Sequence record: MG655267.1
Reading direction: 5' to 3' (one strand)
Length of the DNA stretch: 64,000 nucleotides
Position 1 is the first letter of the stretch. Each line of letters starts with the position of its first letter. Position numbers and translations under genes: made by a program. Below are positions 5,406 through 63,439 of the stretch, one piece after another. Under the pieces are notes generated by a model, which searched no databases, was not told where the DNA came from, and saw only the letters and a program-made list of their open reading frames with translations.

Positions 5406-5433
5406 AGGAGAGCTTCGGCTCTCCTTTATGCCG
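5406..5433 (+). terminator. Hairpin + TTATGCCG terminator-like element
   Basis: AGGAGAGC-TTCG-GCTCTCCT then TTATGCCG, 8 nt after stop codon. Confidence 0.75.
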
Positions 5434-5669
5434 GCTAGGTTTTCCACCCATCTCCTCTATCGGACAACAGATATAGATAGCGTCTGATCAACGTCATTGA
5501 TTACACCTTATTCTACAACCCCAACGTAACCTGTCGACATTCATAAGGGAATGCCACACCGTTGTTTATGTCCGTCCTTATAAAAGAAGCGACCAAGCAA
5601 AAGACCAATAATCCGCAAGCCTTCTTTAAACTAAACCTGTTCTCTTTTCTTATTAATCTGGAGTGTTGT

Positions 5670-6002
5670 ATGGATTTCTCATTTCTACTTGATCAAAACC
5701 CGTTGAGCTATTACAAAAACGAGTTACCGGCCTTAGTCCGTGAACTTAATCGCTCGATGGAAGATGATGCCCGTGTTTCTTGTGAAGACGCACTGAATGC
5801 GCTGGTGCATCTCTTTGCAACACCGGGTGAGCTCATCAGCCTTACTATTCAGCGCCACTGTAGCATCGCTGAGCAGAAGCTGCGTTATACGGCAAAGTTC
5901 ATCAATGACACGGTGGTCACGGTCGAAGGACCTGAACCAATGGATCTGCGCTATGTGCTAGGGACTGCAGTATTTAACGCCATTACCATTCCTATCAAAT
6001 AA
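5670..6002 (+). CDS. Hypothetical protein (110 aa)
   Basis: ATG 5670 preceded by GGAG RBS (TTAATCTGGAGTG, same context as upstream of 35762); preferred over the track start at 5562. Confidence 0.65.
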   Translation: MDFSFLLDQNPLSYYKNELPALVRELNRSMEDDARVSCEDALNALVHLFATPGELISLTIQRHCSIAEQKLRYTAKFINDTVVTVEGPEPMDLRYVLGTAVFNAITIPIK

Positions 6003-6004
6003 AT

Positions 6005-6060
6005 CGGCATAAGAGGAGAGGCATTTGCCTCTCCTCTGTTATGCTACTTCTTTTTTTTTT
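6005..6060. terminator. Bidirectional terminator between convergent genes
   Basis: CGGCATA-AGAGGAGAGGC-ATTT-GCCTCTCCTCT-GTTATGCT, then T10; motif on both flanks. Confidence 0.8.
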
Positions 6061-6063
6061 GGT

Positions 6064-11327: not shown

Positions 11328-11360
11328 CCGGCATAATGAGGGGTCGTCACTGACCCCTCA
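11328..11360 (-). terminator. Hairpin + TTATGCCG element oriented on the minus strand
   Basis: CCGGCATAA-TGAGGGGTC-GTCACT-GACCCCTCA; + side is followed by AAAAG, - side by TTATGCCGG. Confidence 0.6.
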
Positions 11361-16084: not shown

Positions 16085-16137
16085 CAGCATAAAGACAGAG
16101 GGCCTCCGCAAGGAAGCTCTCTGTCTTGTTTATGCCG
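16085..16137. terminator. Bidirectional terminator
   Basis: CAGCATAA-AGACAGAGGGC...GCTCTCTGTCT-TGTTTATGCCG between convergent genes. Confidence 0.8.
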
Positions 16138-19219: not shown

Positions 19220-20482
19220 ATGAGCAGTACTTTATTTCCTGATGTACGTCGGTTGGAGTTTGACCGCTCAGGCATTAGCGCTGACAATCACATCACGGAC
19301 GATTACATTGATCTGCCTGTAGCGGGATCAAACCGGGCGATCGTGTTAAAGCATGGTGCGTTCTATACCGACTCATTGATATTGAAAGATGACAGCGGCA
19401 ATATTCTGGAGAAATGGGTGGATTACCAACCTGTCTATCCTTATAACCGCCCTGAGCTCAATATCACTGAGATGACCGGCAAGGACAACGCAGCGTTTAT
19501 CATGATCCTCAATGCCAGTCTGACTGGGCGGGTGATCGCTGATTATCAGGCAGTGGGGATTCCAAGCGGGATCGCTAACCGGGACTTGATCGATATCCTG
19601 GATGCGATTGCCAAAGATGCGCGTAAGTATTACTGGGATGATATCTTTGATAAGCCCGATAAGTTCCCGCCATCTCCACACCCATTGGATATCAAAGACA
19701 CCTACAACTGGGCGCCGATGACAGAAGCCATGGCACGGTTCGTGGATTGTTTGAAACACCTTGATCGTCTGCCAACCATCCAGGACTACATCGATCAGAT
19801 CGACACGGTGTATAAGGACACGTTACCAAAACTCAATGCAGTTTATAGCGCGTTCCTCACCCACCGTCGGAACTACAGTAATCCGCATCTTGATGTGAAG
19901 ACCACGGTAGTTAATCTGAACAATGTGGATGATTTTGATATGGCGTCCTTGGCAGAGGTCATTGCCGGCACATCCAGTGTTAAGTTCATGTCACCGTACA
20001 CCGGCTCGCAAGCGGCTTACAATACCCTGCTGAAGAATGACACCTCGTTAGTGCACGTTAACCGTGTGCCGATGGTGCAGTTCGGGGACCTGAGCACCAC
20101 TGCGATTCCGTATACGATCGCAGGTTTCGTACTGACCATCACGGCGGACGTGCCGGCGATGTTGGCGTCACGGGAGTTCACCCTGAAGAAAGGGGCGATC
20201 GACCTGACCAAGTTTGTCAGTACACCGGCGAACAAGACCCTCTTCCTCTATGTGCGTATCCGTAATGGACAAGCGAGCTATGAGGTCGCGAGTGCAGCAT
20301 CACCTGAGACCACCACGTATATCAACGTAGGACGCATTGTAACCGGTGCATCTGCTATCACGTCTGTTACGATCAATAAGATCTCCGGACTCGGTACCGT
20401 GCGCGTCAGTGAGGCCCAGATTGGTTCTGCGATTGCAGTGACATCTGGACTGCCATCCCAATCGGCGAATTTGAACTGGTAA
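19220..20482 (+). CDS. Tail fibre-associated virion protein
   Basis: FDRSGISADNHI N-domain, FPPSPHPLD, YSNPH; C-terminal domain ending GSAIAVTSGLPSQSANLNW shared with 20536 and 24076. Confidence 0.6.
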   Translation: MSSTLFPDVRRLEFDRSGISADNHITDDYIDLPVAGSNRAIVLKHGAFYTDSLILKDDSGNILEKWVDYQPVYPYNRPELNITEMTGKDNAAFIMILNASLTGRVIADYQAVGIPSGIANRDLIDILDAIAKDARKYYWDDIFDKPDKFPPSPHPLDIKDTYNWAPMTEAMARFVDCLKHLDRLPTIQDYIDQIDTVYKDTLPKLNAVYSAFLTHRRNYSNPHLDVKTTVVNLNNVDDFDMASLAEVIAGTSSVKFMSPYTGSQAAYNTLLKNDTSLVHVNRVPMVQFGDLSTTAIPYTIAGFVLTITADVPAMLASREFTLKKGAIDLTKFVSTPANKTLFLYVRIRNGQASYEVASAASPETTTYINVGRIVTGASAITSVTINKISGLGTVRVSEAQIGSAIAVTSGLPSQSANLNW

Positions 20483-20519
20483 GGGTGAGTGGGTGACCCC
20501 CTCACCCACTTCCCTATGA
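20482..20519 (+). terminator. Stem-loop, variant tail CTATGAC
   Basis: AGTGGGTGA-CCCCC-TCACCCACT, then TCCCTATGAC. Confidence 0.45.
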
Positions 20520-20535
20520 CCCAGGAGAGGTTTCG

Positions 20536-23500
20536 ATGAACACCCCGATTTTAACGAAGTATAAATTTGACCCCACGGGGAAAGATCCCGAGAACCTGAT
20601 TGGTGGCGAACGCCACACTGTTGCGGCGGGCCCAAAGAACAAAATCATCGCCGTGTTTGAAGGTCCCTTTTTCTCAGCCAGTGCCAAAGTGCGCTTGCTT
20701 GACGGCAGCTACCTGGAACCCTGGGTAGACTTCCAACCCGTGCACCATTTCCCTGAAGCCTCCAAACGCACCGGGAAGTCCTGTACGTGCTTTATCAAGA
20801 TCCTCAATGAATCGGTCAATGGGGATGTCTTTATTGAGTACCAGGTGGTGGGGGGCGAGTTCACCTTCAACAGTATCACGCTTGAGAACCTGTTATGGGC
20901 GATCATTAATGATGAGCGTTCGGTCCTGTGGGATAACATCAACAACCGTCCCGCTACGTACCCGCCATCGTATCACACCCATGATATCTTCAATGACACG
21001 TATGGCTGGGATGATCGTATCGCTTTCAGTAACTGGATCTCGGATTACCTGATCCTCGGTGGCGAGCGCTTGAACTACGAAGGCTTTACCAACAAGGTCA
21101 ATGTGGTACTGGATGAGATCACCACCATTCAGGCGAACATCTTAGCCCAAGTTGCTGAGCATGAAGCCGATCACACCAATCCGCATGCCGATACGGCAAA
21201 GACCTTGGGTTACAACAAACTGCAGAACCTGGCCACCGCGAACGAAGTGCAGGCGCTGGAAGGGCAACGTACCGATCTGCGTCTTACCGTGAAGACGGCT
21301 GAAAGCATTCTGGCGGATGCAGTAAAAGGCTATTCGGTCAACCTGATTCACCAGGGGATTATTCCGGTCAGTCGCTTTGGTAACCTGAACTTCTTACAAC
21401 CAGGGATCATCGGGTCGTTTGAAGGGGCGTCGATGGTTGAAGCAGAAGATCACTACGCCCAGAACGTTGAGAATGACGGCACATACATTCGTTTACGTCC
21501 AGGGACCAACGGTGAATCTATTGCGTTGTATTACGACTATGTCACCAACATCCACAACAACATTAATACATTCACCGTCACCAACACCAATAACAAATAC
21601 ACACCTGCCAGTTTGGATCAGGCGTATATTCCGGCGCGCTTATTTGACTGTCAAGGTGATGTAATTGCCGGGATCATGTACAACAAGGCCGCATTGCCGA
21701 GCACTGCTGATTATAAGTACTGGGTGGCGCTGACCAACGGCACACTGGACAGCACCAAACATAACTGCGCGGTTATCAACAATGCCTATTTTACCATGGA
21801 TGACGGCACAACCCAAGACTTTCGTACCGCCTGGACCCAGTTTTGTTTGATAGGTTCTCGGATTTACATCATCCATCAGAATCCAAACATCGCTACTACG
21901 ATGGAGGCCGGTGGTTCAATCTCTGTCAACGCAATTCCCCAATTCTATCTCGGGTATATTAACGTTGCCGATGTAGTGGCCGGCGGTCCGGTGAATGTGA
22001 CTCAACTTACGGGTTGGGCAACAACGCTGTTAGGTCAGACCCGTACAGCAGCTCGCAGTATGCAAATCTGTGATCAGGTGATTGGTCGCTCTAATCAGCA
22101 CGTTCTGGTGCGTTATGACGGAAATCAATACGTCAAAGCACAATACCGCTCATGGCCAGGTGGTTATGGTAAATTGGTTGCCAACACCGACGGTACGTTA
22201 ACCATGTTGGTTGACTTCACCCTCAACGTTGATGGTCGCAACAATTCCAACATCTCAATGTTCCCAATCCGTTTCATTGTGGACTTAAATGCCAAGACTG
22301 TGCGGTCACCCGAAACGATGAACCCGTTTGTGATTATCGACGCCCCTAACAGTAACCTGACCATGACGGTGAATACCAACGGGTCTAACCTGAACATGTT
22401 CAAACTACGCGGGGTAAATGATGGCGGGACGGCACTGACCGGTGATTACCACGGCAGTCGGATGATCACGAAGAAAGGGTATTCAATCTGCACCCATCGC
22501 CAACAATCCACCAACCTCGGTTTGCGGGTTGATGTCCAACAGATCCCGAACTTTACGAACATCGATGCCTACTGGCGCAATCCAGCCGGGTACAGTAATG
22601 TACTGTATCGTTCAGTAGGAGATGACACCTCCTACGGTTCTGAGGCCAAAGGTAACTTACGCTGCCCAATCCTCTTCCCGAACAACCGTTTAGGTTTCTA
22701 CACTCTGGACTCTAGCGGTACGCATTTTGTGTCACAGCCGCTCATTGGCAATGGTGATTTCGTTTATAAACTGATCGGACTTGGAACAGTGCAGGGTTTC
22801 CAGCCCTCGAACGACCGTGTGAAGGCTGTGATTAAGTACCCTACCCGTGAGATCATCACTGAGATCAACGGCGGGTCTGTGGTCACACATTGCCGTTCAA
22901 TCTCTGACGATGCACCCGCGGGACCAGCTAACATTGATTACTTGCTCAATGAATCGGGTAGTATCAGTACCGATGTGAACTATCTGCGGTCGCAGGGTCA
23001 GCGTGTGTTAACTCAACTCGGTATTACGGCAGCTAAGTTCAGATGTATTTTGTTTGTACCGACCGATGGCGGGATGTCATTGATGTTGAAGGTTGTGGGG
23101 TATACTCCCCCGCAAGCTAACGGCATTACTAACACCATCACTGCAATCGCAACTGTGACGTATGGCGGTGCACGTGATGGTGTGTTAGCTGGCTGGACTG
23201 CCAATGTGGATGATATCATTAGCAAACCGGAAGTGGTCGGTACGTCAGATATCTCCCGCATCCAAACGACTTTTGGTTTATTGACATATAAGGTAGGGAA
23301 TGAATACATCGTTGCGATGGGTGGGTTCTATTGCCCTTACACAGTAGGTCCGGCTAACAATTTACCATTAGTGTACTTAAAAATGACTAATGGTCGGATT
23401 GCCGGCAATCCATCTAACCAGTACTTTGTTTCGCCGTACGTCGACTTGCTGTCTAACACACCGTTTGCACTGCCGGGCAAGGGTTTGTTTGTAACTTACT

Positions 23501-24027
23501 CAGACGGGAACTACACCACTCCTGTAACGCCTGATGCGGCGGCTGCGGTAGGTCCGTGCGCGATTGTGGTTGCGGGTCAGGGCGAGGATTTCGAGAAAGT
23601 ACGGCAATGGACTATTCCAGGCAACTCTACGATGGTGCTGTTGTCACAAACAGTAGAACAAGGCTGGATCTTGTACTTTGCTGAAGAGATCCCGGTGATT
23701 CTGAATGGGCGGGAGTACGCCTTACCGATCACCAGTATCGACCTGCGTAATGTGAAAGCTAACCCGGCGAGCACCACCTTCTTTGTCTACATTGAAGCTG
23801 TGGATGCAACTACTGCGAAGTACACCATCTCAGCCACGGAGTTGGCGGCTGCGACCACACGGATGTTCATTGGCACGGTAGCAACCAATACGTCACAGAT
23901 CAACACGATCAACGTGACCAAGCGATCGGGTCTGAATAAGTACCAGATCTCTGCGGTGAAAGCCGGATCGTCTATTCCGGTGTCAACCGGCTTGCCGTTC
24001 CAACGCGGTAACTGGAGTCAGGAATAA
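20536..24027 (+). CDS. Long tail fibre protein (phiKZ gp145/146-like)
   Basis: 1163 aa; FDPTGKDPENLI N-domain, HTNPH, beta-rich body, conserved C-terminal GSSIPVSTGLP domain. Confidence 0.7.
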   Translation: MNTPILTKYKFDPTGKDPENLIGGERHTVAAGPKNKIIAVFEGPFFSASAKVRLLDGSYLEPWVDFQPVHHFPEASKRTGKSCTCFIKILNESVNGDVFIEYQVVGGEFTFNSITLENLLWAIINDERSVLWDNINNRPATYPPSYHTHDIFNDTYGWDDRIAFSNWISDYLILGGERLNYEGFTNKVNVVLDEITTIQANILAQVAEHEADHTNPHADTAKTLGYNKLQNLATANEVQALEGQRTDLRLTVKTAESILADAVKGYSVNLIHQGIIPVSRFGNLNFLQPGIIGSFEGASMVEAEDHYAQNVENDGTYIRLRPGTNGESIALYYDYVTNIHNNINTFTVTNTNNKYTPASLDQAYIPARLFDCQGDVIAGIMYNKAALPSTADYKYWVALTNGTLDSTKHNCAVINNAYFTMDDGTTQDFRTAWTQFCLIGSRIYIIHQNPNIATTMEAGGSISVNAIPQFYLGYINVADVVAGGPVNVTQLTGWATTLLGQTRTAARSMQICDQVIGRSNQHVLVRYDGNQYVKAQYRSWPGGYGKLVANTDGTLTMLVDFTLNVDGRNNSNISMFPIRFIVDLNAKTVRSPETMNPFVIIDAPNSNLTMTVNTNGSNLNMFKLRGVNDGGTALTGDYHGSRMITKKGYSICTHRQQSTNLGLRVDVQQIPNFTNIDAYWRNPAGYSNVLYRSVGDDTSYGSEAKGNLRCPILFPNNRLGFYTLDSSGTHFVSQPLIGNGDFVYKLIGLGTVQGFQPSNDRVKAVIKYPTREIITEINGGSVVTHCRSISDDAPAGPANIDYLLNESGSISTDVNYLRSQGQRVLTQLGITAAKFRCILFVPTDGGMSLMLKVVGYTPPQANGITNTITAIATVTYGGARDGVLAGWTANVDDIISKPEVVGTSDISRIQTTFGLLTYKVGNEYIVAMGGFYCPYTVGPANNLPLVYLKMTNGRIAGNPSNQYFVSPYVDLLSNTPFALPGKGLFVTYSDGNYTTPVTPDAAAAVGPCAIVVAGQGEDFEKVRQWTIPGNSTMVLLSQTVEQGWILYFAEEIPVILNGREYALPITSIDLRNVKANPASTTFFVYIEAVDATTAKYTISATELAAATTRMFIGTVATNTSQINTINVTKRSGLNKYQISAVKAGSSIPVSTGLPFQRGNWSQE

Positions 24028-24034
24028 CCAGCAC

Positions 24035-24059
24035 GGGGGAGGTGACTCCCCCTTTCTTT
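24035..24059 (+). terminator. Canonical intrinsic terminator
   Basis: GGGGGAG-GTGA-CTCCCCC followed by TTTCTTT. Confidence 0.65.
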
Positions 24060-24075
24060 ATTGAAAGGAGTTGCC

Positions 24076-27000
24076 ATGAGCAGCAACCTTGTGGTCGAGC
24101 CAGGCAGTTGGGGTGAGTTCTATGCCTCGATTGAAGCTTTGACCTGGAAGTTACAAAACTCACGTTATTCTCAGTATGATCTGGCTTCCACGGTGATGGT
24201 CAACTTTGAAAACGATGTTGATGATCTGGTAACCAGTGCACAGACCCTTTTAGCCAGTCATCAGGCACGTCGGGATAATGTCCATCAGGTGAACGCCGAG
24301 CAGTTGGGGTTTGGCTTAGTCGATAACTTTAAAACTGCAACCGTAGCACAAGCCGGCGAAGGCGGATACCCCAATCTCTTTGTTACCCCACAGGGGTTTA
24401 ATGCCCTGGCGAGTAAAGTGTTTGCAGATTTCGGTTCATCACTTCATCATCAAGGGATCAACCCAATCTCGTCGTTTGGTTCGCTGTCTTTCCTCCCCCC
24501 TGACGTCTCCGGTTCTTTTGAAGGTTCAGGTCAGGTATCGGGAAACTCAGCCAGTCCAATGATCATTGAAGACGATGGAACATTAGTGGGGTTGCGCTAC
24601 GGTACCACAGGCACCACCGAAGGATTGTACTACTTCTACTTACCAACCGCTGAAGACCGTATTGATAACGCGTCTGTTATTCGCACCAACTTTAAGTATG
24701 CACCTGCAAACTTACCGGCGGGGGCTTATTGCACCGATGTTTACAATACCGAGTCGGATGTGCTGCTGGGGAATATCAAAGGGTCATCGAGCTACAATTG
24801 GTTTATCTCCATTACCAACGGGACGTTTGACGCCACCAAACACAACACCGCTTACTTCACTATCAACGGTGATTCGGACCTTGCTTACCTGGGTAAGTAT
24901 TCCACGGCGCTGGTTGTCAATGGCTATGTTTATATTTTCGGCATGTTGGATGACGGCTTTACCACCAACCGACCTATTGGTGGTGAGTTGAAAAACACCC
25001 AACCCATTGACATGGTGGTGTGGCGCGTTGCAGTAAGCAGTATCATTAATAACAATGCGGTGACTCTTGAAAAGATCAGTACTTGGTCTACCAAAGATAT
25101 CTGGGGTGACACAACCAGCAATCCCCGTATTCAGCTCAGTAAAATCGCGATCAGTGAGAATGCAGCTGACAAACCGTATGTGCAGGTGAATGGCACGCTG
25201 GTGCGCTCAGTAATCGTTCGTAATGCCCAGCGTCGTCTGTTTGCCGTGGTTGACCCAAGCAACCCTAACCGTATTCGGTTGGCTGTTAATCACACCTTTT
25301 ATGCGCAGCTCTCAACCGGCAGCAGTTATAACGGCAGTTGTGCGTTGAGCCTGTTGCTGGATCTGACTGCAAAGACCGCAGTGGTGGAAGATAACGCCAA
25401 CCGTATCCTGGTCGGTGTAAGTGGCCAGACGGTTACTGTGTCCGGCAATACCCTACTGACTGATAATCTGTTAACAGGCTCGGCACTAGGGGGTAACTGG
25501 CATCCAAACGTCACGTTGACCTCACGCGGGTATCTGTTCTGTCGCACCTCAGGTAACCAGCCAGATGAGAACCCACGGTTCAGTAAAGGACTGATCACCA
25601 ACTTTACTACCCGGTTTGAAGCGATGCGGATTCGGTCACGTCAAGTGCGCCAGATAACCCTGGTTACCGACCCACTGGTTACCGGTACGGCACTGACCAA
25701 CAACTTCATGAAGCCACAGTACTTGGCCGGTAATGCGTTGTTGCTCACCAGTAACCCGTACAAGACGCCCGGGTATTACGCTTACGGTACGACTAAACGG
25801 GTATTGCTTACCGGGTCACCTACCTTTAACTACACGCTGAACTCCGGTGTGACGTTACAGGGCTGGGCGCCTAACAGCAACCGTTATGAGATCACCGATG
25901 CCAACAACCCACCCCGCAATCGCTTTTACCACATCATCACCCAGGTTGACAGTGCCGGTAATGTGACCTCCAGTCCGTCAGTGTTGTCAGATGGTAGTTC
26001 TGCACAAGTGGGCACTTCCATTGACGCTAACCTGAACATCACCGGCTCGATCACTTTTAACCAGGCTGAACTGAACACCGTGGCGAAAGCGGCGTGTCAG
26101 ACTGCCTTGGGGGCTGCGCCGTCGTTGTGGCGTGGTTTGATCTATGTCCCGCAGGATACCGCGGTGCCGTTGATCATGGTGTGTACCGGTGAAGTACTGC
26201 GCAGTGACGGTAACGGTTATCGGGTGAATCACTCGTTGGTTGAGTTAACGTACACCGGTGCGCGTTCAGGGAACATTACTGGCTATACCGTGAAGCGGGT
26301 ACTCAACTCACAGCTCAATGACCAGCAACCAACCGGCGTGCCGTTAGAGCTGGCGTGTAACGGTGGGTTGAACATCTACAAAACAGCGGCCGGCGATTAT
26401 CTGCTGGGGATTGGCGAACCTACCTTCCATCAGACCTACGGTGGGATCTACGGTTATGTCTGGTATGCGGCGATCAAAGCAGGCACAGGCACCATTGAAG
26501 ACAGTTCGTTAAAAGCCTTTAACCATGGCTATTATCCGACGTCCGTCAACCCAACCCCGGTTGTGGTGCCGGGTTATGGTTTGTGTGTAATGGATTATCA
26601 GACGCAGCAGGCTAACGCCAACGCCCTGATGATTGTGGATGTGATGGCGGCAACCTACGCCGAGTTTGTTGCCTGGACGTCCAAGCGTAAGCTGGTCTTA
26701 ACCGCACAACAGGTAGAGCAAGGGTATCTTGTTTACTTCACGGCACCCACTCAGGTGTTCATGGCTGGTAACGAATACACCCTGCCTGCGGGTAACATTG
26801 ACCTGCGTACCATCACTGCCAATCCTGCCAGTAAGACGTTCTATGTTTACGTGCAGTTAGTCGACGAGCAGGTACAATACCTGATCACCCTCGATCAACT
26901 CGCCCCAACCATAACGTTGATGTACATTGGCAAGATTACCACCAACACCACGCAAATCAGTAGCATTGCTGTTGATAAACGTATCCGCATCGAAACCTTC

Positions 27001-27531
27001 GAATTGTCAGCTACCCACATCGGGTCGGGTATTCCGATCACGACAGGCGTGCCGTCAACCGCGGGTAACTTTGCATGGCGTAATGGTTACTTGAAACTGA
27101 TGAGCTTTGCAATGCAGCTGGACTATAATGGTATTGTGACAGTGAATCTGAGAACGGGTGCGGTAACCATTGAAATGAGTGTCTCTGGTACACCACCAGA
27201 TTCTGTGAGCAGAACAAGAACACAGACTGTCTGGTCTACTGGTGAGACCTGGGTGCCTGGTCTGGTGACGGTGGGGACCGAAGCATCAGGGGCAAGCGAT
27301 GCATTCAATACGTACGCGAGTACATCGAAAACCTTCCCAGCTCTGGCGAGGTCAGATATCGCAAACAGTACTGGGCTTGCAGTTATGATGGGTAACGAAA
27401 GTAACCCAACTAACAAAGGCGTCTTTACTCAGCAGCCAAGTGCAGCCAATGACTATACCCTTAAGTGGAAAGTCACTGATACACCGGGTGGCGCTGGCGA
27501 ATACACCTTTGATCTGTATGTGAAATACTAA
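24076..27531 (+). CDS. Long tail fibre protein, paralog of 20536 with extra C-terminal domain
   Basis: ATG 24076 with AAGGAG; HQGINPISSFGSLSFLPPDVSGSFEG matches HQGIIPVSRFGNLNFLQPGIIGSFEG of 20536. Confidence 0.7.
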   Translation: MSSNLVVEPGSWGEFYASIEALTWKLQNSRYSQYDLASTVMVNFENDVDDLVTSAQTLLASHQARRDNVHQVNAEQLGFGLVDNFKTATVAQAGEGGYPNLFVTPQGFNALASKVFADFGSSLHHQGINPISSFGSLSFLPPDVSGSFEGSGQVSGNSASPMIIEDDGTLVGLRYGTTGTTEGLYYFYLPTAEDRIDNASVIRTNFKYAPANLPAGAYCTDVYNTESDVLLGNIKGSSSYNWFISITNGTFDATKHNTAYFTINGDSDLAYLGKYSTALVVNGYVYIFGMLDDGFTTNRPIGGELKNTQPIDMVVWRVAVSSIINNNAVTLEKISTWSTKDIWGDTTSNPRIQLSKIAISENAADKPYVQVNGTLVRSVIVRNAQRRLFAVVDPSNPNRIRLAVNHTFYAQLSTGSSYNGSCALSLLLDLTAKTAVVEDNANRILVGVSGQTVTVSGNTLLTDNLLTGSALGGNWHPNVTLTSRGYLFCRTSGNQPDENPRFSKGLITNFTTRFEAMRIRSRQVRQITLVTDPLVTGTALTNNFMKPQYLAGNALLLTSNPYKTPGYYAYGTTKRVLLTGSPTFNYTLNSGVTLQGWAPNSNRYEITDANNPPRNRFYHIITQVDSAGNVTSSPSVLSDGSSAQVGTSIDANLNITGSITFNQAELNTVAKAACQTALGAAPSLWRGLIYVPQDTAVPLIMVCTGEVLRSDGNGYRVNHSLVELTYTGARSGNITGYTVKRVLNSQLNDQQPTGVPLELACNGGLNIYKTAAGDYLLGIGEPTFHQTYGGIYGYVWYAAIKAGTGTIEDSSLKAFNHGYYPTSVNPTPVVVPGYGLCVMDYQTQQANANALMIVDVMAATYAEFVAWTSKRKLVLTAQQVEQGYLVYFTAPTQVFMAGNEYTLPAGNIDLRTITANPASKTFYVYVQLVDEQVQYLITLDQLAPTITLMYIGKITTNTTQISSIAVDKRIRIETFELSATHIGSGIPITTGVPSTAGNFAWRNGYLKLMSFAMQLDYNGIVTVNLRTGAVTIEMSVSGTPPDSVSRTRTQTVWSTGETWVPGLVTVGTEASGASDAFNTYASTSKTFPALARSDIANSTGLAVMMGNESNPTNKGVFTQQPSAANDYTLKWKVTDTPGGAGEYTFDLYVKY

Positions 27532-27533
27532 AT

Positions 27534-27579
27534 CGGCATAGAGGGAGAGGCTAACACCTCTCCCTCGTGCTTTATGCCG
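27534..27579. terminator. Bidirectional terminator
   Basis: CGGCATA-GAGGGAGAGG-CTAACA-CCTCTCCCTC-GTGCTTTATGCCG between convergent genes. Confidence 0.8.
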
Positions 27580-27580
27580 A

Positions 27581-28519
27581 TTAAACAGGACCACCAGTTT
27601 CTGAACCGCCTTTCTGTACCCCGCCGTGCAGGTGGCCGGTTAGTGAAATCCCGGCTGCGACAACATCCGCTGGGGTGTTTAAACCGCCAGAGGTCTCAAT
27701 GTGACCATTGTGGTCGATGTCACCAATCATACTGATCCCGCCTGGAGAATTGATCGTGGTTTTATTAGTAATAAGCTCGAAGGATTCATTAGCCGTGATC
27801 TTCATGGTTTTGCACAACATGGAAATCAATTCTTGGGCAGTGAGATTGAAGTTCTCTTGCGCAATGATTTCAATGTTCTTTTTGCTCATGGTGATCAGAC
27901 ACTTGTCAGTATTGGTGATCTGCCATAACGCTTCAAGCGAGTTCAGGACCAGGTTGTTGTCCAGGTCATCCGCCAATGAGAAGATCGCTTCACCATAATC
28001 CGCCTTGATGACATACTGGACTTGTTCGCCATTCATCTTCGAGTTGGACATCATGAAGTGTTTTTTATGAGAGGACCATTCAATGAAGTACCAGTCTCCT
28101 TCACCGATGTTCTTGTCTTCGGTGGTAGCAGGCGACCCACTCAAGGCAATGATGATGGTCTCTAAACGCCGCAAATCATCATCCAGACCCGTTTCCGTCC
28201 AGTAGTACTTGTCCTCGTCACCAATCTGCCAGATCACGACACGTTCACCTTTGACCACATCGGGGGCGGTGACGCGGTTAGAACGGAATGGGAACCAGAT
28301 TGCTGCGATAGTGGAGTCCGTTACCACTTTGTCTTGGGTGCTGTCACCCGACGAGGTCTTGCCATTATGGGTGATGACCTGTGGGTTCACTTCAGCTTCA
28401 CCCGACATCATCGGTGCAGTTTCACGGGGAATAACTTGAATCTCTTTGCTGTTGGTGCTCTTGACTGCAGCCACCACACCCATAGAGTAAAATTTAAGAA
28501 CCGATACGTTACTGGCCAT
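27581..28519 (-). CDS. Baseplate central spike (gp5/gpV-like; phiKZ gp164-like)
   Basis: OB-like N-domain RVTAPDVVKGERVVIW, beta-helix-like middle, C-terminal HxH metal-binding tip LTGHLHGGVQKG. Confidence 0.8.
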   Translation of the reverse strand: MASNVSVLKFYSMGVVAAVKSTNSKEIQVIPRETAPMMSGEAEVNPQVITHNGKTSSGDSTQDKVVTDSTIAAIWFPFRSNRVTAPDVVKGERVVIWQIGDEDKYYWTETGLDDDLRRLETIIIALSGSPATTEDKNIGEGDWYFIEWSSHKKHFMMSNSKMNGEQVQYVIKADYGEAIFSLADDLDNNLVLNSLEALWQITNTDKCLITMSKKNIEIIAQENFNLTAQELISMLCKTMKITANESFELITNKTTINSPGGISMIGDIDHNGHIETSGGLNTPADVVAAGISLTGHLHGGVQKGGSETGGPV

Positions 28520-28784: not shown

Positions 28785-28795
28785 CGGCGCACATC

Positions 28796-41657: not shown

Positions 41658-41664
41658 TGACCTC

Positions 41665-41698
41665 ACCCAATCAGTGCAGCCGCTGGTTGGGTTTTCTT
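41665..41698 (+). terminator. Canonical intrinsic terminator
   Basis: ACCCAATCAGTG-CAGC-CGCTGGTTGGGT-TTTCTT. Confidence 0.6.
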
Positions 41699-41723
41699 AC
41701 GCTTCATTATAAAGGAAGACATC

Positions 41724-46541: not shown

Positions 46542-46570
46542 AAGAGGACTTCGGTCCTCTTTTATGCCCG
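46542..46570 (+). terminator. Hairpin + TTTATGCCCG
   Basis: AAGAGGAC-TTCG-GTCCTCTT-TTATGCCCG. Confidence 0.75.
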
Positions 46571-47558: not shown

Positions 47559-47588
47559 GGAGAGGCGTATAGCCTCTCTCTTATGCCG
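47559..47588 (+). terminator. Hairpin + TTATGCCG
   Basis: GAGAGGC-GTATA-GCCTCTC-TCTTATGCCG. Confidence 0.75.
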
Positions 47589-50022: not shown

Positions 50023-50050
50023 AGGGGGAGGGAAACCTCCCCTTATGCCG
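50023..50050 (+). terminator. Hairpin + TTATGCCG
   Basis: GGGGAGG-GAAA-CCTCCCC-TTATGCCG. Confidence 0.75.
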
Positions 50051-52775: not shown

Positions 52776-52824
52776 CCTATTATATAGGTTGTAACTCAAT
52801 GGGATGGTGATCTTTTATCTTCCG

Positions 52825-52900
52825 CGGGTGAGGGTTAGAACCCGGCTGTGGCCGCATAGCCAAAGTCGGTTAATCAAAGTCGACGGATTTGGATTACCCG
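52825..52900 (+). ncRNA. Candidate structured ncRNA (four-way junction)
   Basis: Closing stem CGGGTGA/TTACCCG encloses three hairpins; lies in a ~190-nt intergenic gap ending at a terminator. Confidence 0.35.
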
Positions 52901-52962
52901 GCGTGACTTGTCATTGTTTCACTTTGTTCTACTACACAAACAGCTCAACTCTCTCATAATTC

Positions 52963-52993
52963 AAGGGGTGGGGTAACTCACCCCTTTATGCCG
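52963..52993 (+). terminator. Hairpin + TATGCCG
   Basis: AAGGGGTGGG-GTAA-CTCACCCCTT-TATGCCG. Confidence 0.75.
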
Positions 52994-53537: not shown

Positions 53538-53540
53538 CGG

Positions 53541-53568
53541 GAGGAGGCTTTGGCCTCCTCTTATGCCG
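53541..53568 (+). terminator. Hairpin + TTATGCCG
   Basis: GAGGAGGC-TTTG-GCCTCCTC-TTATGCCG. Confidence 0.8.
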
Positions 53569-57555: not shown

Positions 57556-57921
57556 ATGAAGAGAGAGTCCAGTTACACCCTGGTCTTTGGGGAAGGTAGT
57601 ACTGAAGAAGATGTCAATACCCTGCGTGAGATGGTGTCACACATGCGGGGGTTGACTGGGTTGTCGCAGCTGGGGGCGTTTGAGGTGTTCGTTACCCATT
57701 ATGAATTGCAACGTAAAGACGCAGGGCTAATCACCAGTAATCTTCCAGTGAATGCACAGTCGTTGTTTGATGTCAGTGATCGACAGAACTGGCTGACACC
57801 GCTGTTCACTTCACGGGGATTAGTGGCGTGTGACTTGTTGTTGCTGTTGAAGCAAGGCAAATGGGCCGGAGAACACCTCAAGGTGACCTTTCGGGTAAAG
57901 GGTATCGGGGCGAAAGCATAA
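57556..57921 (+). CDS. Hypothetical protein
   Basis: 121 aa, GGGAG RBS. Confidence 0.6.
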   Translation: MKRESSYTLVFGEGSTEEDVNTLREMVSHMRGLTGLSQLGAFEVFVTHYELQRKDAGLITSNLPVNAQSLFDVSDRQNWLTPLFTSRGLVACDLLLLLKQGKWAGEHLKVTFRVKGIGAKA

Positions 57922-57922
57922 C

Positions 57923-57955
57923 GCATACGGAGGGGTCATTCCCTCCGCTATGCCG
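57923..57955 (+). terminator. Hairpin + CTATGCCG
   Basis: GCATA-CGGAGGGG-TCAT-TCCCTCCG-CTATGCCG. Confidence 0.7.
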
Positions 57956-57990
57956 ATTAAGTTTTTAACAAAGTTTACTGCAGATCTTTT

Positions 57991-58004
57991 CAGACCTATA
58001 TCAC
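57991..58004 (+). promoter_or_regulatory. Candidate phage early promoter CAGACCTATATCAC
   Basis: AT-rich upstream; matches the 40026 site; upstream of the 58054 cluster. Confidence 0.55.
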
Positions 58005-58053
58005 GTCGGTGAATAACCTTTCACTAATTAACCAATCCGTAAGGAGTTTTATC

Positions 58054-59430
58054 ATGGCTGCATTAAAATCTAAAGTTGAACTGTTTCACTGGTATCAGGA
58101 ACTGAAAACTGAATTTAAAACCGGCAAGATTACCGTGTTCGAATTTGAGCGGCAAGTGCTCAGCGAAATTCTTTCCCTGACCGATACTGGTAAAACACCA
58201 TCTACTGCCAAAATCAGTCTGGTAGTGGACATCCTTAATTCTGTGGTTTTTGATCATGTGTTTACCGCAGACGGTATCATTGACCTGGACAACATGCTCG
58301 CTCGTGAACACGTACGCAACATTTCGGAATTGACGGCAGCACGCAATAACTTTATTACCATACAAGCCCAGGCCCGTCTGAACAAAGAAAAGGAACAGAC
58401 TGCGAAACCAGCAGAGCAGAAGGCGTTTGCCAAGTTTCCAACGAAAGAAGAGCTCGAATATTGGGTTAATGCCAGAAAGCTATTCCGTTATGGTAACCCC
58501 AATACGCTCGGCACTGAAGCATACCAGGAGGTTGTCAAATACTGGCATCTGGTCGATAAATATCTGGGTACATTAAAACTGGAACTGGATCACACCGACC
58601 CTAACTACGTCGATAACATCCTGTTGATTGACTACTTTGTATCGTTGGTCGCCAAGCAAGAGGTTCCTGAGGAAGAACGCAGGCATCTGAAAGACACACT
58701 TAGCAGTCTATATGCGTGCCCCATTAAAACCCCACACATCGATGCATTTGTCGAACGTGACCAACACCCCCTTCCAGTTAAGCCAAAACAACCACCCATC
58801 GCGCAACAAGCCATCGACCGCGCTATTGCCTGGCGTGAAGAGGAAACCAAAACAAACCATCAGCAAAAAGACATATTACGAGAATTCGCCGATCAATACT
58901 GTCCGGTAATGGTGGCCAAGCAACATGCCACTCAGCAGTTGTTTGATTTCGTTGCTCGTGCGGTGAAACGTGTCTTGACCGCCATTGCTCAGCCAAACAA
59001 CCCGGAAGACGCCGAGATGCTGGCAAAAGGTCATGCCATCAACATTCTCAATGTTAAGCATGGTGTAATTGGTGTCAGTACCACGATTACCAGAAACGGT
59101 CTGGTCAAGTTACGCATCTTCGCTGAACGTGAACTATGTAACGAGGACTACGGTATTCCGACTCTGTCGTATAATCAAGTCCGTCAATCACCTCATGCAA
59201 CGTTCAGCATACCAATGCCGGCACTGATAGATGGGTTCATTAACATGTGGGATATCCCTAATCAGGCCCCTCGCCATATGCATAATAGCGTAGGCGGTAT
59301 GTTGGGTAATCCCTATCCGTTACAGCAGCTTGATGGTTTGATGTCAGCTATTGCAAGAGAAACAGCCGAGTACGGCGTTACGCCTACTTATGGCATGATC
59401 GAAGACAGCATGATTGTTGTGCTGCATTAA
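58054..59430 (+). CDS. Hypothetical protein with two copies of a helical W...G...(Y/F)E module
   Basis: ATG 58054 after AAGGAG; KVELFHWYQELKTEFKTGKI and TKEELEYWVNARKLFRYG...LIDYFVSLVAKQE. Confidence 0.75.
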   Translation: MAALKSKVELFHWYQELKTEFKTGKITVFEFERQVLSEILSLTDTGKTPSTAKISLVVDILNSVVFDHVFTADGIIDLDNMLAREHVRNISELTAARNNFITIQAQARLNKEKEQTAKPAEQKAFAKFPTKEELEYWVNARKLFRYGNPNTLGTEAYQEVVKYWHLVDKYLGTLKLELDHTDPNYVDNILLIDYFVSLVAKQEVPEEERRHLKDTLSSLYACPIKTPHIDAFVERDQHPLPVKPKQPPIAQQAIDRAIAWREEETKTNHQQKDILREFADQYCPVMVAKQHATQQLFDFVARAVKRVLTAIAQPNNPEDAEMLAKGHAINILNVKHGVIGVSTTITRNGLVKLRIFAERELCNEDYGIPTLSYNQVRQSPHATFSIPMPALIDGFINMWDIPNQAPRHMHNSVGGMLGNPYPLQQLDGLMSAIARETAEYGVTPTYGMIEDSMIVVLH

Positions 59431-59437
59431 TTCACAC

Positions 59438-59468
59438 GGGGAGGTTTCCCTCCCCCTTTTATTTTTTA
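59438..59468 (+). terminator. Canonical intrinsic terminator
   Basis: GGGGAGG-TTTC-CCTCCCC-CTTTTATTTTTT. Confidence 0.75.
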
Positions 59469-59493
59469 ATTAACCTACTGTGAGAATTTAACC

Positions 59494-60195
59494 ATGAACA
59501 AAGAAACTTATACTACCTGGTACAATGGATTAAAAGAAAGATTGGCGACTGGGCACATTAATCAAGAACACTACGAGACACTTATTGTTGACAATCTAAG
59601 TTCATTGATTACTCATTTCTTCAATAGTCGATACGACGATGGTCATATGTCTCTGGAGGAGCATTTTGCGTTAGTTAATCATTATTTCGAACTGGTTGCT
59701 GATGCAGAAATATCAGAACGCAGTGCCATGCTCATGGTACGTTCTGTAGCTAGCAGTATTCAAAAGCTACCAGCGGCTAAAGCCTTCGCAGAGAAACATA
59801 ACACTCCGGCGCCGTCAATTAAAGAAATTCTTGGTAGTCGACCTGGTTTACTGCGTAAGCATGCTGCCAGCACGACCGAGAAGATGATAGGGTGTCCGGT
59901 GATCACCCAGGCCAACGAACCTGAGAACGAAGTAACCATTGACTTACCCTGGAAATTGGCATTGCACGTTTACAAAGGGTTCCTGGTAAAGGCGCTGATG
60001 TCAAAGCACGGATATAAATACAGTGATGCGTATAACTACATTACTGATCATCAGAACAAATACGACGAACTCTTGGCAGAAGTCCTCAACAACATTATTG
60101 CTAATGAGGAATCGCATCTGGTGTCGGTAGGTGGCGGCATCACTGCAGCGGGTACTGGTCTGGTGGTAAGCGGGATTATTAAGCCGGAGGAGTGA
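59494..60195 (+). CDS. Helical module fused to an RNA polymerase beta-prime fragment (switch 2/dock), non-catalytic
   Basis: GSRPGLLRKH...GCPVIT...LPWKLALHVYKGFL aligns to RpoC [10 protein letters not shown]...GRSVIT...LPKKMALELFKPFI; no NRAPTLH or NADFDGD. Confidence 0.65.
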   Translation: MNKETYTTWYNGLKERLATGHINQEHYETLIVDNLSSLITHFFNSRYDDGHMSLEEHFALVNHYFELVADAEISERSAMLMVRSVASSIQKLPAAKAFAEKHNTPAPSIKEILGSRPGLLRKHAASTTEKMIGCPVITQANEPENEVTIDLPWKLALHVYKGFLVKALMSKHGYKYSDAYNYITDHQNKYDELLAEVLNNIIANEESHLVSVGGGITAAGTGLVVSGIIKPEE

Positions 60196-60755
60196 TGAAA
60201 GGAGAGATAGAGACACGCTTCAGAAGACACTACGGCAACCACATTAAACGGGGTAGTGATATCGCAGTGCCTTTATACCACATTAGTCTACAGAATGACT
60301 TGGAGGGGCTATGGCGACCTAAAGCCCCTGACTCGCCATTTGATATTCCGAAGAAACCCAACATCATTACTGAAATGCCGCTCCCGCGTATCTGTGTAGC
60401 ACCATCTATCGAACAGTGCTTCTGGGCAATCTATCCCAATATCTCTAAGCTCTTTGAAGAGGAAGAATACGCAGCGGTTTGTTTTGCGGTTTATCAACCG
60501 ATTCTGCATGCCGGTATTGCTGTCGTGGATACCAGTACGTTAACGCAATGCCGACTAGTGCACGATGCACATATTACCGGCGAGCATTGGTTACTTAGTG
60601 ATACCACCATGTGTGTGATCGACTTTATTCAGGTTAATAACACCTCACACGGCGAGTTCGTAAAGTTCCATCCGTTTAATACCCCGGTTGGTAACGAATG
60701 GGAGCTCGCCCCTAAAAATGTTGTTTATCATTCACTTAAATTAACGGAGTTGTAA
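60192..60755 (+). CDS. ADP-ribosyltransferase-fold-like phage protein
   Basis: LYHIS, PRICVAPS, VHDAHITGEHW follow the ART H/R-S-E scaffold order. Confidence 0.5.
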   Translation: MMKGEIETRFRRHYGNHIKRGSDIAVPLYHISLQNDLEGLWRPKAPDSPFDIPKKPNIITEMPLPRICVAPSIEQCFWAIYPNISKLFEEEEYAAVCFAVYQPILHAGIAVVDTSTLTQCRLVHDAHITGEHWLLSDTTMCVIDFIQVNNTSHGEFVKFHPFNTPVGNEWELAPKNVVYHSLKLTEL

Positions 60756-60759
60756 ATCC

Positions 60760-61404
60760 ATGGTAACTGCTAGAAAAGCTAATAAGACCTTAGGTGAGCA
60801 CGCAGTGGCTCATGAGGCAGTAACACGCTTAGGTAGCAACAAGAAAGTCAAACCAGTTAAACCGCTTTGGACACTGGAGAACATCGAGGACAATCTGGTT
60901 GGTCAAGGCATCCTTGCCTACTTGAAACGCCACACGTCGTTATCGATCCGTGATATCAACACCGCGGCTAACCGCCTGACGAAGATTGCTGATTCAGATA
61001 TAAAGGAAGGGAAAGCGCGTGATTACGTGGCACGAGTTATTGGGTACAACAATTACGACGCTCTCAACGTCACCGTTCGTGCAGCGGTACCTGTGCGCAA
61101 TCATGTACAACGTCGTAAAGCAAATCAGCCGGTCACAGAGTTGTTGATAGAAGACGAAGAACTGCCGCCGGTAACACGTACTGAAATCAACCCCTTGGTG
61201 ATGTTAGCCCTACAGCGTGAGATCTCTAAACGCGGCTTTCGTCTACTGGGTAAGAACTACCGGGCTTTCGTTAACAAGGATAACCCCGAGCACACCTTTA
61301 CGTTGATGCAGGCGTATAACTACCTTGCCAAACAACTGGGTTATCCGGATTATCACTCTATGCCCCGTCAATACCCAATCATTAACTTGCGCTACGTCGA
61401 TTAA
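60760..61404 (+). CDS. Hypothetical protein with two helical repeats
   Basis: ARDYVARVIGYNNYDAL and AYNYLAKQLGYPDYHSM (Glyoxalase_8-like helical motif). Confidence 0.65.
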   Translation: MVTARKANKTLGEHAVAHEAVTRLGSNKKVKPVKPLWTLENIEDNLVGQGILAYLKRHTSLSIRDINTAANRLTKIADSDIKEGKARDYVARVIGYNNYDALNVTVRAAVPVRNHVQRRKANQPVTELLIEDEELPPVTRTEINPLVMLALQREISKRGFRLLGKNYRAFVNKDNPEHTFTLMQAYNYLAKQLGYPDYHSMPRQYPIINLRYVD

Positions 61405-61426
61405 CCTATTGTAAGGAATAAAGAAC

Positions 61427-62176
61427 ATGACAACGACTTTCCCGAAAGAGATGAATGCTGCTTTCCATCCTGATAACGAACAAACCACCCAGCTGTGCAA
61501 AACGATCCAGCAGATCAGCGGGGTGGAGATCAAACGTGTACATGTGGTGATGGCGATCCACCATTACAAACAAAACGATGCGGCACATCAGCCTGACCAC
61601 ATGCTGGCGGTCTTAGCAGAAGCAGCCCACATCATCCAGTCGTTTCCTGACCTGGAGAAATGGCGCACCCAGATCATGTTAGGGTGTCTGTTCCATGACA
61701 CCCACTGTCACATCGATCGGGATATGCACCACCTGCTAGGCGCCGAACATGCCCAAGAGGCATTACTGGAGTATGCGTGTGGTTATGGGATGTCACGTGC
61801 GGATGTCTACCTGATCAGTCAGGCCGTACTGGAGCATCGGGCTTCCTGGAAGTACCCGCGTATTAACCCTGTATCCAACGCTGTGGCGTCTGCAGATCGT
61901 GGCTACCCTGATCTAAAGAAATACATCCGTCGCGCTGTACAGTACCGTTACAAGCGTATGGCAGTCATCAACATGAACACCATTATCGATGAGTCGATCG
62001 AACACATGGTAGAGAAGTTCGGGGATGGTGGTTACGCCTGGGAAAGCTACCCGACGTATGCAGCAGTGATGCACGGTGATGCGATCCAACAAGTGAAACA
62101 ACAACTGCGCAGTAAAGAAGGAAAGGCGCAGCTCAAAGAGTACGCTGAACTCCACTTTGATGAGTGGGTAGAATAA
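61427..62176 (+). CDS. HD-domain phosphohydrolase
   Basis: AHQPDHM, CLFHD, HHLLGAEH, EHR, ASADR. Confidence 0.85.
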   Translation: MTTTFPKEMNAAFHPDNEQTTQLCKTIQQISGVEIKRVHVVMAIHHYKQNDAAHQPDHMLAVLAEAAHIIQSFPDLEKWRTQIMLGCLFHDTHCHIDRDMHHLLGAEHAQEALLEYACGYGMSRADVYLISQAVLEHRASWKYPRINPVSNAVASADRGYPDLKKYIRRAVQYRYKRMAVINMNTIIDESIEHMVEKFGDGGYAWESYPTYAAVMHGDAIQQVKQQLRSKEGKAQLKEYAELHFDEWVE

Positions 62177-62183
62177 GCTACGT

Positions 62184-62213
62184 GGCCGGAGGTAATCCTC
62201 CGGCTGTTATGCC
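62184..62213 (+). terminator. Hairpin + GTTATGCC
   Basis: GCCGGAGG-TAAT-CCTCCGGC-TGTTATGCCT. Confidence 0.7.
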
Positions 62214-62336
62214 TGTTCTTTCTTCTTTGTAATTCCCAACACATTCGGTCTTTGTTATACAAAGGCTATAATCTTTGTCCCGAGCTAAGGGTAACGTGAA
62301 CAGTTATGCTGGCTTACTTTTTAAAGGTATCTTTTC

Positions 62337-62867
62337 ATGGATGGTTTATTTAATCTCTCCTCATGGCAATCGCTTTTACTTGTGGTAGTCGTACTCCTAC
62401 TGTGGGCGTATTACCAACGACTTCAACACCTGCGTCGTAAGTATCATCGTCGTAATGAACGCATGATGGCGCAGAGCGTGGTCATGACATCCCGGCTGTT
62501 ACTGAGTACCTTCTCGGAGATTGTGGAACGCGCTAAAGAGGAGGACATCTACCAGCGTGATCCTAACTCCCCGATTGCGGCAGACCGGGCCAGTGCGATG
62601 GCCTGCTCCTCCATCTTCAGTGGGTTGTATAACCTGGTTGTGGTGCCCGTCACCACCCTTGATCCGGTGTTCAACGATTTATTGATTACCGGTACTGAGC
62701 GGGAAGATGTTGAGGAAGGGGTCTTTGTGTCGTTTTATTTGGGTGAACAGCGTAATGATGTGGTTAGGCATTTTATACCCGACCGGTCGTTACAGGCCTT
62801 TATCACCCAAACGCGTGCCTTCAGTGCTTACCTGCGACAGGCTGCGAATACAAAACCACCACAATGA
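62337..62867 (+). CDS. Membrane-anchored hypothetical protein (paralog of 62876)
   Basis: N-terminal TM followed by basic residues. Confidence 0.7.
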   Translation: MDGLFNLSSWQSLLLVVVVLLLWAYYQRLQHLRRKYHRRNERMMAQSVVMTSRLLLSTFSEIVERAKEEDIYQRDPNSPIAADRASAMACSSIFSGLYNLVVVPVTTLDPVFNDLLITGTEREDVEEGVFVSFYLGEQRNDVVRHFIPDRSLQAFITQTRAFSAYLRQAANTKPPQ

Positions 62868-62875
62868 GGTGACAC

Positions 62876-63406
62876 ATGACCAATTATGGTTTTCTGCTGA
62901 ACACAGTACTTCTGGCTTTTCTTATTTGGTTTGGTTACCGACTGCACACGTTGGTAAACAACAGCGAGAAAGCCACCCTCGCCGCTGATCATAACGCCAA
63001 GCTGCGCTTCCTGACCTATGCAGCCCGGCAGATAATGAGTGACTTGTATACGTCGCTCAATCTTCCGACGCTCACCGGGTGTGCGAAGATGTATCTACGC
63101 GATGACGGCAAGCTTGATAATATTGAAGTCATTATGCGACTCTTCATGAAAACCCATAATGAGATTATTACCAAGCTCTCCGAGGGATTGGTGTCGGATC
63201 ATTTGAAGATCACCGATGTTAAAGTTACCCATGATCTGGTGACCAACGAAGTGCTCATCACACTCTTGTATCCGAATAAAGTCACTGACATCCTGGTCTT
63301 CCATCATAACCACCTGGCGCAGGCGATCTACCAACTGGATCGATTGCAGCATCGGCTCTCAACGTTCCACAAAGCGGTGCCGAACCGCGACCTGTACCAA
63401 CTCTAA
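62876..63406 (+). CDS. Membrane-anchored hypothetical protein (paralog of 62337)
   Basis: GAGGTG RBS; N-terminal TM; same length (176 aa). Confidence 0.7.
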   Translation: MTNYGFLLNTVLLAFLIWFGYRLHTLVNNSEKATLAADHNAKLRFLTYAARQIMSDLYTSLNLPTLTGCAKMYLRDDGKLDNIEVIMRLFMKTHNEIITKLSEGLVSDHLKITDVKVTHDLVTNEVLITLLYPNKVTDILVFHHNHLAQAIYQLDRLQHRLSTFHKAVPNRDLYQL

Positions 63407-63409
63407 ACC

Positions 63410-63439
63410 AAGGGAGGGCTTCGGCTCTCCCTTATGCCA
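63410..63439 (+). terminator. Hairpin + TATGCCA
   Basis: AGGGAGGGC-TTCG-GCTCTCCCT-TATGCCA. Confidence 0.75.

Follow-up and report, generated by a model that had tools for sequence, protein, structure and literature searches.

Long-read transcript mapping of the nucleus-forming jumbo phage phiKZ (Putzeys et al. 2024) revealed 133 termination regions, 61 of which contain a stem-loop and a TTAT region (PMC10914365). The consensus is a hairpin followed by YTTATKYYGT, six bidirectional pairs are present, and predicted intrinsic terminators dominate the set (PMC10914365). The same mapping method, applied to phage 201phi2-1, yielded 132 termination sites, 59 of them with a motif "strongly resembling" that of phiKZ, and eight terminators of this "motif A" were tested in vivo (PMC11512511). 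Six 201phi2-1 terminators, with tails including TTTATGCC, TTTATGTT and TTTATGAC, equalled or beat lambda T0 in uninfected Pseudomonas chlororaphis (PMC11512511). Here, elements composed of a GC-rich hairpin and a short tail word, typically TATGCCG, are described in a stretch of 64,000 nucleotides (nt), termed the window, which corresponds to bases 1–64000 of Erwinia phage vB_EamM_Bosolaphorus (MG655267.1, 272,228 base pairs (bp); 100% match over positions 20000–32000). The elements are very probably transcription terminators of the factor-independent (intrinsic) type, such as phiKZ-like nucleus-forming jumbo phages use. As a kind, the element is already published for phiKZ and 201phi2-1 and is not new. 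The anatomy, placement, orientation, conservation and covariation described below were computed here, and the 3′ ends and the reporter termination are taken from the papers on the relatives. We infer a like function in Bosolaphorus, with both phage polymerases, and a role for the CC|G junction in pausing.

Bosolaphorus belongs to the genus Agricanvirus, species Agricanvirus ray, the type of which, RAY, is a characterized nucleus-forming phage (PMC10299810). It is a phiKZ-like phage with its own virion and non-virion multisubunit RNA polymerases; several split beta-type subunits are annotated in its record, and its capsid protein has relatives in phiKZ, 201phi2-1 and Goslar. In the descriptive paper of the genus, a MEME motif search was made and the resulting motifs were dismissed without follow-up, so the element seems to be undescribed for Agricanvirus. 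A literature search with the word TATGCCG returned only a primer in an unrelated genome announcement, and no Rfam family matches within the window.

Placement and Orientation of the Elements

The window contains 20 copies of TATGCCG, compared with 6.64 ± 2.67 expected from 100 shuffles of the window, none of which reaches 20. Thirteen of these copies are non-coding and are located 0–6 nt 3′ of a GC-rich stem-loop. The seven copies without a hairpin are all intragenic, and their number is that expected by chance. An earlier note on this DNA listed 15 hairpins followed by TATGCC(G), all of which are present, 12 with TATGCCG and three with TATGCCC (46563), TATGCCT (62208) or TATGCCA (63433). Their assignment to 15 gene ends holds with the exception of 11329, where the motif is found only on the − strand, between two + strand genes. 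The inverted motif noted on both flanks of three convergent junctions is also observed, with both strands carrying it at 6005/6040, 16085/16131 and 27534/27573.

Genome-wide counts were obtained from a genome joined from six annotated stretches, the first 64 kilobases (kb) of which are identical to the window, with gene calls from a codon-usage model that misses a few small genes; distances at the window sites were checked against the deposited annotation. TTATGCC and TATGCCG are the most frequent non-homopolymer intergenic 7-mers, with 33 of 46 and 29 of 48 + strand copies, respectively, located in the non-coding 8% of the genome. A hairpin precedes TATGC in 80 of 391 cases; the 59 other permutations of its letters, several of them with ~800–1300 copies each, average 26. 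In total, 63 intergenic elements with a hairpin and TATGC are found, 57 of which lie 3′ of a co-oriented stop codon at a median distance of 41 nt (quartiles 30–57), in agreement with the strand-specific 3′-end signal proposed in the earlier note. The next gene lies 1–479 nt away from the element. Twenty-five of the 63 elements are located at convergent junctions and face the 3′ end of the converging gene, so a promoter at these positions would have no gene to serve.

Anatomy of the Hairpin and Tail

The tail is also recovered when the motif is ignored. Among 89 strong hairpins located just after stop codons, 68 have TAT at most 9 nt from the last G:C pair, and the positions after TAT are occupied by G (74%), C (75%), C (69%, with T at 25%) and G (59%). 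This profile was anchored on the last G:C pair, since the raw end of the hairpin is blurred by A-U and G-U extension of the stem. At least six T in the first 8 nt are observed in only 12 of the 89 hairpins, the typical tail being TTATGCCG; the ~7–9 U right after the hairpin that characterize a canonical terminator are not what is found here. A mirrored CATA flank is present at 20 of 25 convergent elements compared with 9 of 31 tandem elements. An extension of the stem by pairing of the tail with an upstream CATAA was considered as the role of the tail and is ruled out for one-directional sites, as 22 of the 31 tandem sites have no complement.

UUCG or GNRA loops close the hairpin at approximately half of the one-directional sites, which points to a hairpin at the RNA level. 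The stem arms of all terminator hairpins are strongly asymmetric in purine and pyrimidine content, with a polarity that is specific to the lineage: purines make up ~80% of the 5′ arm in Bosolaphorus, AH06 and a Vibrio phage, and ~20–30% in phiKZ, 201phi2-1, Goslar and SEGD1. Several stems are repeated without change at loci that are otherwise unrelated; AGGAGAGGGC, for example, is found five times.

Comparison with Phage AH06

Erwinia phage AH06 is collinear with Bosolaphorus and ~69% identical in the early region, and 50 Bosolaphorus elements have a counterpart at the orthologous place in AH06. In these 50 pairs, the stem is identical in 11 and the loop in 16, and several hairpins are wholly different. 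Comparison of 28 stems of the same length reveals 28 double compensatory pair changes, 10 single changes of the wobble type and 6 with a mismatch. In the tail, identity is 98% for the G and C that follow TAT and 84% for the C and G after them. Because the stems change with compensation and the letters of the tail stay, the hairpin appears to be selected as structure and the tail as sequence. The view that the conserved part is the sequence after the hairpin rather than a copied repeat is thereby upheld.

The same comparison bears on whether the elements could be signals in DNA, for example cruciforms, boundaries of modules or of recombination, or sites to which a phage DNA protein binds, with the transcript ends being incidental. 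Many of the elements are perfect palindromes, and at some bidirectional sites the hairpin, including its loop, is inverted between Bosolaphorus and AH06 with both flanking tails in place (16085–16137; genome 252808–252834). In addition, contigs of a related phage in a public run cease to match the window directly after the TATGCCG at 57955 and match it again from 57981, which hints that the terminators mark mosaic boundaries between relatives. A double-stranded DNA signal has no need, however, of the strand-specificity relative to gene direction described above; UUCG and GNRA loops stabilize RNA and not DNA; and the covariation of the stems maintains pairing with G-U pairs included. A DNA-level signal is thus regarded as extremely improbable.

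Position of the Transcript 3′ End

Placement of the six printed 201phi2-1 3′-end coordinates on the deposited genome yields a single register, TTTAT(G/A)NN|G, in six of six cases. The ends are located eight nt after the last G:C pair and immediately before a G: TTTATGCT|G, TTTATGTT|G, TTTATGCC|G (two sites), TTTATGAC|G and TTTATACC|G. By homology with 201phi2-1, TTATGCC|G is the expected end of Bosolaphorus RNA. In multisubunit RNA polymerases, the pause consensus is G(−10)Y(−1)G(+1), the core of which is the pyrimidine at the RNA end and the G that comes next (PMC6062546).

In the mechanism proposed for Bosolaphorus, the nascent RNA would fold into a GC-rich hairpin, often with a UUCG or GNRA tetraloop, and the next ~8 nt, (Y)UUAUGCC, would stand in for the usual U-tract. 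The transcript would end after the second C, right before the conserved G, a position in keeping with the pause consensus, which has a pyrimidine at −1 and G at +1 (PMC6062546). The probable role of the tail is to slow the polymerase at a set distance from the hairpin, letting the hairpin release the RNA. At convergent pairs, one palindromic hairpin with a tail on both strands would stop transcription from both sides. The earlier note had favored a terminator specific for the phage RNA polymerase. This specificity is not supported: the homologous 201phi2-1 terminators worked in uninfected P. chlororaphis, where only the host RNA polymerase is present (PMC11512511), and therefore need no phage polymerase.

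Similar to the phiKZ motif, the Bosolaphorus element is composed of a GC-rich stem-loop, a pyrimidine, TTAT, G or T, two pyrimidines and G, and it is located after gene ends and is bidirectional between convergent genes; the two phages also share a family and a polymerase set. The main differences are that the Bosolaphorus tail is sharper and richer in GC (TATGCCG compared with TATGTTGT in phiKZ) and that its 5′ stem arm is 80% purine, whereas that of phiKZ is 26%. The 3′ ends of phiKZ and 201phi2-1 are mapped ones, and those of Bosolaphorus are predicted. Motif A of 201phi2-1 has the same architecture, and exact TTTATGCC|G is found at some 201phi2-1 sites (179552, 229201). It differs in the host genus, in stems that are mostly pyrimidine-first, and in that its activity was shown in uninfected Pseudomonas. 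With a canonical intrinsic terminator, the element shares the hairpin, a 3′ end ~8 nt past the stem and bidirectionality given an upstream complement, and some Bosolaphorus sites are truly canonical, with a long hairpin and a T10 run; in place of the U-tract of 7–9 nt, however, Bosolaphorus has a word containing GCC. With respect to the elemental pause consensus, the predicted 3′ end is a C and the next nucleotide is a G, but the −10 position is in the pyrimidine-rich 3′ arm and not on a G.

Several observations weigh against assignment of the elements as intrinsic terminators. The public sequencing runs identified were DNA runs except for two of unknown kind; compared with 57800–63700, these two turned out to be low-depth, DNA-like contigs of related phages, and they contain no transcript ends and give support neither way. 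The tail has only ~4 U in 8 nt, unlike textbook intrinsic terminators. The element at 11329 runs antisense to the + strand genes on either side of it, and 11 of the 31 tandem sites are only 14–33 nt upstream of the next start codon, a spacing that leaves room for read-through or re-initiation and none for a separate promoter. The resolution of the long-read method is only ~2 nt for start sites, as stated by its authors, so the exact 3′-end register rests on the agreement of the six sites. Finally, the mapped 3′ ends and the fluorescence reporters of the relatives cannot tell termination from cleavage followed by trimming up to a protective hairpin.

This last point is the basis of a processing explanation, in which the polymerase would read through, and an endonuclease would cut in single-stranded UAUGCCG, leaving a 3′ end that the hairpin would shield from exonucleases. 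A conserved single-stranded tail beside a stable hairpin is also the appearance expected of a sequence-specific nuclease site, and the 3′ ends and reporter assays of the relatives fit cleavage as well as termination. The 8-nt distance from the stem to the 3′ end, like the Y|G junction, is instead in line with pausing and termination by a polymerase, and the phiKZ set is dominated by predicted intrinsic terminators. In addition, phages of Pseudomonas, Erwinia, Escherichia and Ralstonia have retained the tail, and Klebsiella and Serratia phages have close variants of it; this retention across several hosts favors a phage-encoded or universal reader over one host nuclease. RNA processing is thus a very unlikely account of the elements.

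Relationship to the Late Promoter Core

The tail contains TATG, which is the necessary core of the late promoters of phiKZ that are used by the non-virion RNA polymerase, with the G as +1 (PMC4666361, PMC12809450). In these promoters, TATG is bound as single-stranded non-template DNA by the beta-like subunit, under the beta lobe, and TATG alone is insufficient for promoter activity (PMC4666361, PMC12809450). The terminator TATG could thus double as a start core for the non-virion RNA polymerase, with re-initiation at its G giving transcripts that begin with 5′-GCCG. The necessity of TATG in phiKZ favors such a coupled stop and restart, as do the 11 tandem sites described above, where only a ribosome-binding site lies between the element and the start codon, and the partial depletion of TATG and CATA within genes (0.76 and 0.62 of the expectation from synonymous shuffles). 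TATG is present at all sites, and the 31 tandem sites are compatible with a promoter, but 25 of the 63 elements are directed at the 3′ end of a gene that converges on them and have no co-oriented gene downstream. The reference late promoter P119L has no upstream hairpin, the candidate late promoters of Bosolaphorus are TATGT or TATGA and not TATGCC, and TATG by itself is not enough in phiKZ. Several sites have a probable early promoter of their own, CCTACATTAC, downstream. The depletion of TATG is also no stronger than that of many other words; lower values against synonymous-codon shuffles are observed for GAGG, which is Shine-Dalgarno-like (0.48), and for TTTT (0.41). Taken together, a coupled stop and restart is unlikely.

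Intergenic TATG without a hairpin is followed by C in 12 of 75 cases, which is no preference, and hence the tail is not a generic promoter word. The likeness to the phiKZ late promoter is confined to the four letters TATG on the non-template strand. The late promoters lack a hairpin, as seen for P119L, and are not conserved after TATG, whereas CCG comes next in the Bosolaphorus elements.

A tentative extension of the terminator assignment, one that we consider improbable, is that a single non-template-strand pocket of the phage RNA polymerase reads TATG both at terminator tails and at late promoters. The parts that recognize the promoter are permanent subunits in the phage polymerases, so an elongating enzyme could catch TATG, stall a few nt further on at CC|G with the hairpin newly formed, and go on to release the RNA or to start again from TATG. 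If this were true, a single protein-DNA contact would serve both terminator and promoter, much as in the sigma-dependent pausing of bacteria, and nucleus-forming phages of Pseudomonas, Erwinia, Escherichia and Ralstonia would all have conserved it.

A separate word, CCTA[CT]ATTA[CT], has 18 intergenic copies in the genome, all on the + strand, typically after an A/T-rich stretch and often 20–40 nt past a terminator. It resembles TATATTAC, found 3′ of the phiKZ capsid terminator, and is probably an early promoter for the virion polymerase. In the window, probable cores with the sequence CCTACATTAC are located at 32730–32739 and 40030–40039, both on the + strand.

Individual Sites in the Window

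Three putative bidirectional pairs are visualized in the window. Between gp5 and gp6, the − strand terminator of gp6 (6005–6037) has an 11-bp stem and TATGCCG, and the + strand terminator of gp5 (6012–6046) shares its hairpin, followed by GT and TATGCTA, with a T10 run at 6051–6060. Between gp13 and gp14, the − strand terminator of gp14 (16085–16125) has a 14-bp stem, TT and TATGCTG, and the shared hairpin continues on the + strand into TGTT and TATGCCG after gp13 (16093–16137). Between gp20 and gp21, the − strand terminator of gp21 (27534–27566) has an 11-bp stem and TATGCCG, and that of gp20 on the + strand (27541–27579) uses the same hairpin with GTGCTT and TATGCCG.

The remaining putative terminators that follow a gene are on the + strand. 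Those with TTCG loops are located after gp4 (5406–5433; 8-bp stem, T, TATGCCG; with an ortholog in AH06), gp50 (46542–46569; 8-bp stem, T, TATGCCC) and gp76 (63411–63439; 9-bp stem, TATGCCA). GAAA loops are found after gp40 (40399–40428; 9-bp stem, T, TATGCCG) and gp56 (50024–50050; 8-bp stem, TATGCCG). Further sites follow gp29 (35239–35270; 9-bp stem, TTT, TATGCCG), gp51 (47559–47588; 8-bp stem, CT, TATGCCG), gp63 (53540–53568; 9-bp stem, TATGCCG), gp69 (57928–57955; 8-bp stem, C, TATGCCG) and gp74 (62182–62214; 11-bp stem, TATGCCT). The gp51 site has a wholly different stem and an identical tail in AH06. The reverse face of the gp69 hairpin, on the − strand (57921–57947), has a weaker tail, TATGCGT. 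The orphan element on the − strand at 11329–11360 is antisense between gp7 and gp8, which are virion genes, and no counterpart was found in AH06; it may serve to stop antisense read-through from the gp16–gp14 block.

A putative terminator at 52963–52993 (+ strand; 10-bp stem, GTAA loop, TATGCCG) closes a conserved non-coding stretch of ~190 nt after gp61. This stretch (52776–52962) folds better than 200 of 200 shuffles (z −3.4), is conserved with AH06 at the nucleotide level with frame shifts, and has no Rfam match. These features suggest a small non-coding RNA rather than the 51-codon open reading frame at 52804–52959.

The deposited start codons of gp57 (50045), gp62 (52988) and gp51 (46564) are the ATG within the terminator word TATGCC. 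In-frame ATG codons with a ribosome-binding site are located downstream for gp57 (50063, after GGAGGGG) and gp62 (53009, after AAGGA), and a gene call scored for ribosome-binding sites places the start of gp51 at 46615. The deposited starts of these three genes are probably mis-annotated.

U-rich variants without the motif are observed, as described in the earlier note, on the + strand after gp19 (24035–24063; hairpin, then TTTCTTTATTG), gp43 (41664–41700; hairpin, then TTTTCTTACG) and gp70 (59438–59467; hairpin, then CTTTTATTTTTT), and two of the three still contain TTTAT. Genome-wide, the remainder of the 89 post-stop hairpins are mostly followed by TTTAT and then T-runs, or by variants such as TTATACCG, and composite sites exist in which the hairpin is followed by TATGCTGC and then T10. 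The U-rich sites exist, but their proposed standing as a separate class is only partly supported, as most share the proximal TTTAT and composites occur; U-rich and TATGCCG tails look like a continuum. A division of the two tails by gene class or by polymerase was considered, and no clear pattern was seen. Runs of at least seven T, such as that at 6051–6060 in the window, number 19 on the + strand compared with five on the − strand, and nearly all begin 8–12 nt after a hairpin and TATG. At convergent junctions, the + strand TATGCTG can pair with an upstream CGGCATA to form a long hairpin directly before T10. Such junctions combine a canonical terminator, read in one direction, with one of the TATGCCG type in the opposite direction.

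Distribution in the Phage Family

The sequence after the hairpin 3′ of the major capsid gene was compared across the family, and tails were surveyed over 120–280 kb per genome. At the capsid gene, a hairpin with TTATG-Y-Y-G is found in pEa_SNUABM_48 (TTTTTATGCCG), Goslar (TTTCTATGCCG), 201phi2-1 and phiKZ (both TTTATGTTGT) and RSL2 (TTTATGCTGT), and close variants are found in FBKp24 (TCTATGTTTG), 2050HW (TTTATTTTGCC) and RP31 (TTTTATTTTGC). The SPN3US-like phage SEGD1 and a Vibrio phage have a plain U-tract at this position. In the survey of tails, TAT-G-Y-Y-G is dominant in AH06, RP31, pEa_SNUABM_48, phiKZ and 201phi2-1; in SEGD1, PCH45 and the Vibrio phage it appears weakly or not at all. 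Enrichment of exact TTATGCCG is confined to Agricanvirus (Bosolaphorus, AH06), pEa_SNUABM_48 and RP31. Enrichment in the genome and its relatives, which the earlier note had put forward as a check, is therefore seen in Bosolaphorus and, as a dominant TAT-G-Y-Y-G tail, in several relatives.

For the Agricanvirus fire-blight phages, the elements provide a ready map of ~60 transcription-unit ends and flag start codons that are annotated inside a terminator tail. The terminator word of phiKZ and 201phi2-1 is not a peculiarity of Pseudomonas phages: nucleus-forming phages of Erwinia, Escherichia and Ralstonia keep it too, with a spelling that depends on the lineage. Klebsiella and Serratia phages have close variants of the word, and SPN3US-like and some Vibrio and Serratia members have plain U-tracts. 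This spread, together with a 3′ end just before the conserved G, opens to direct test which feature of the tail is recognized and which polymerase recognizes it.

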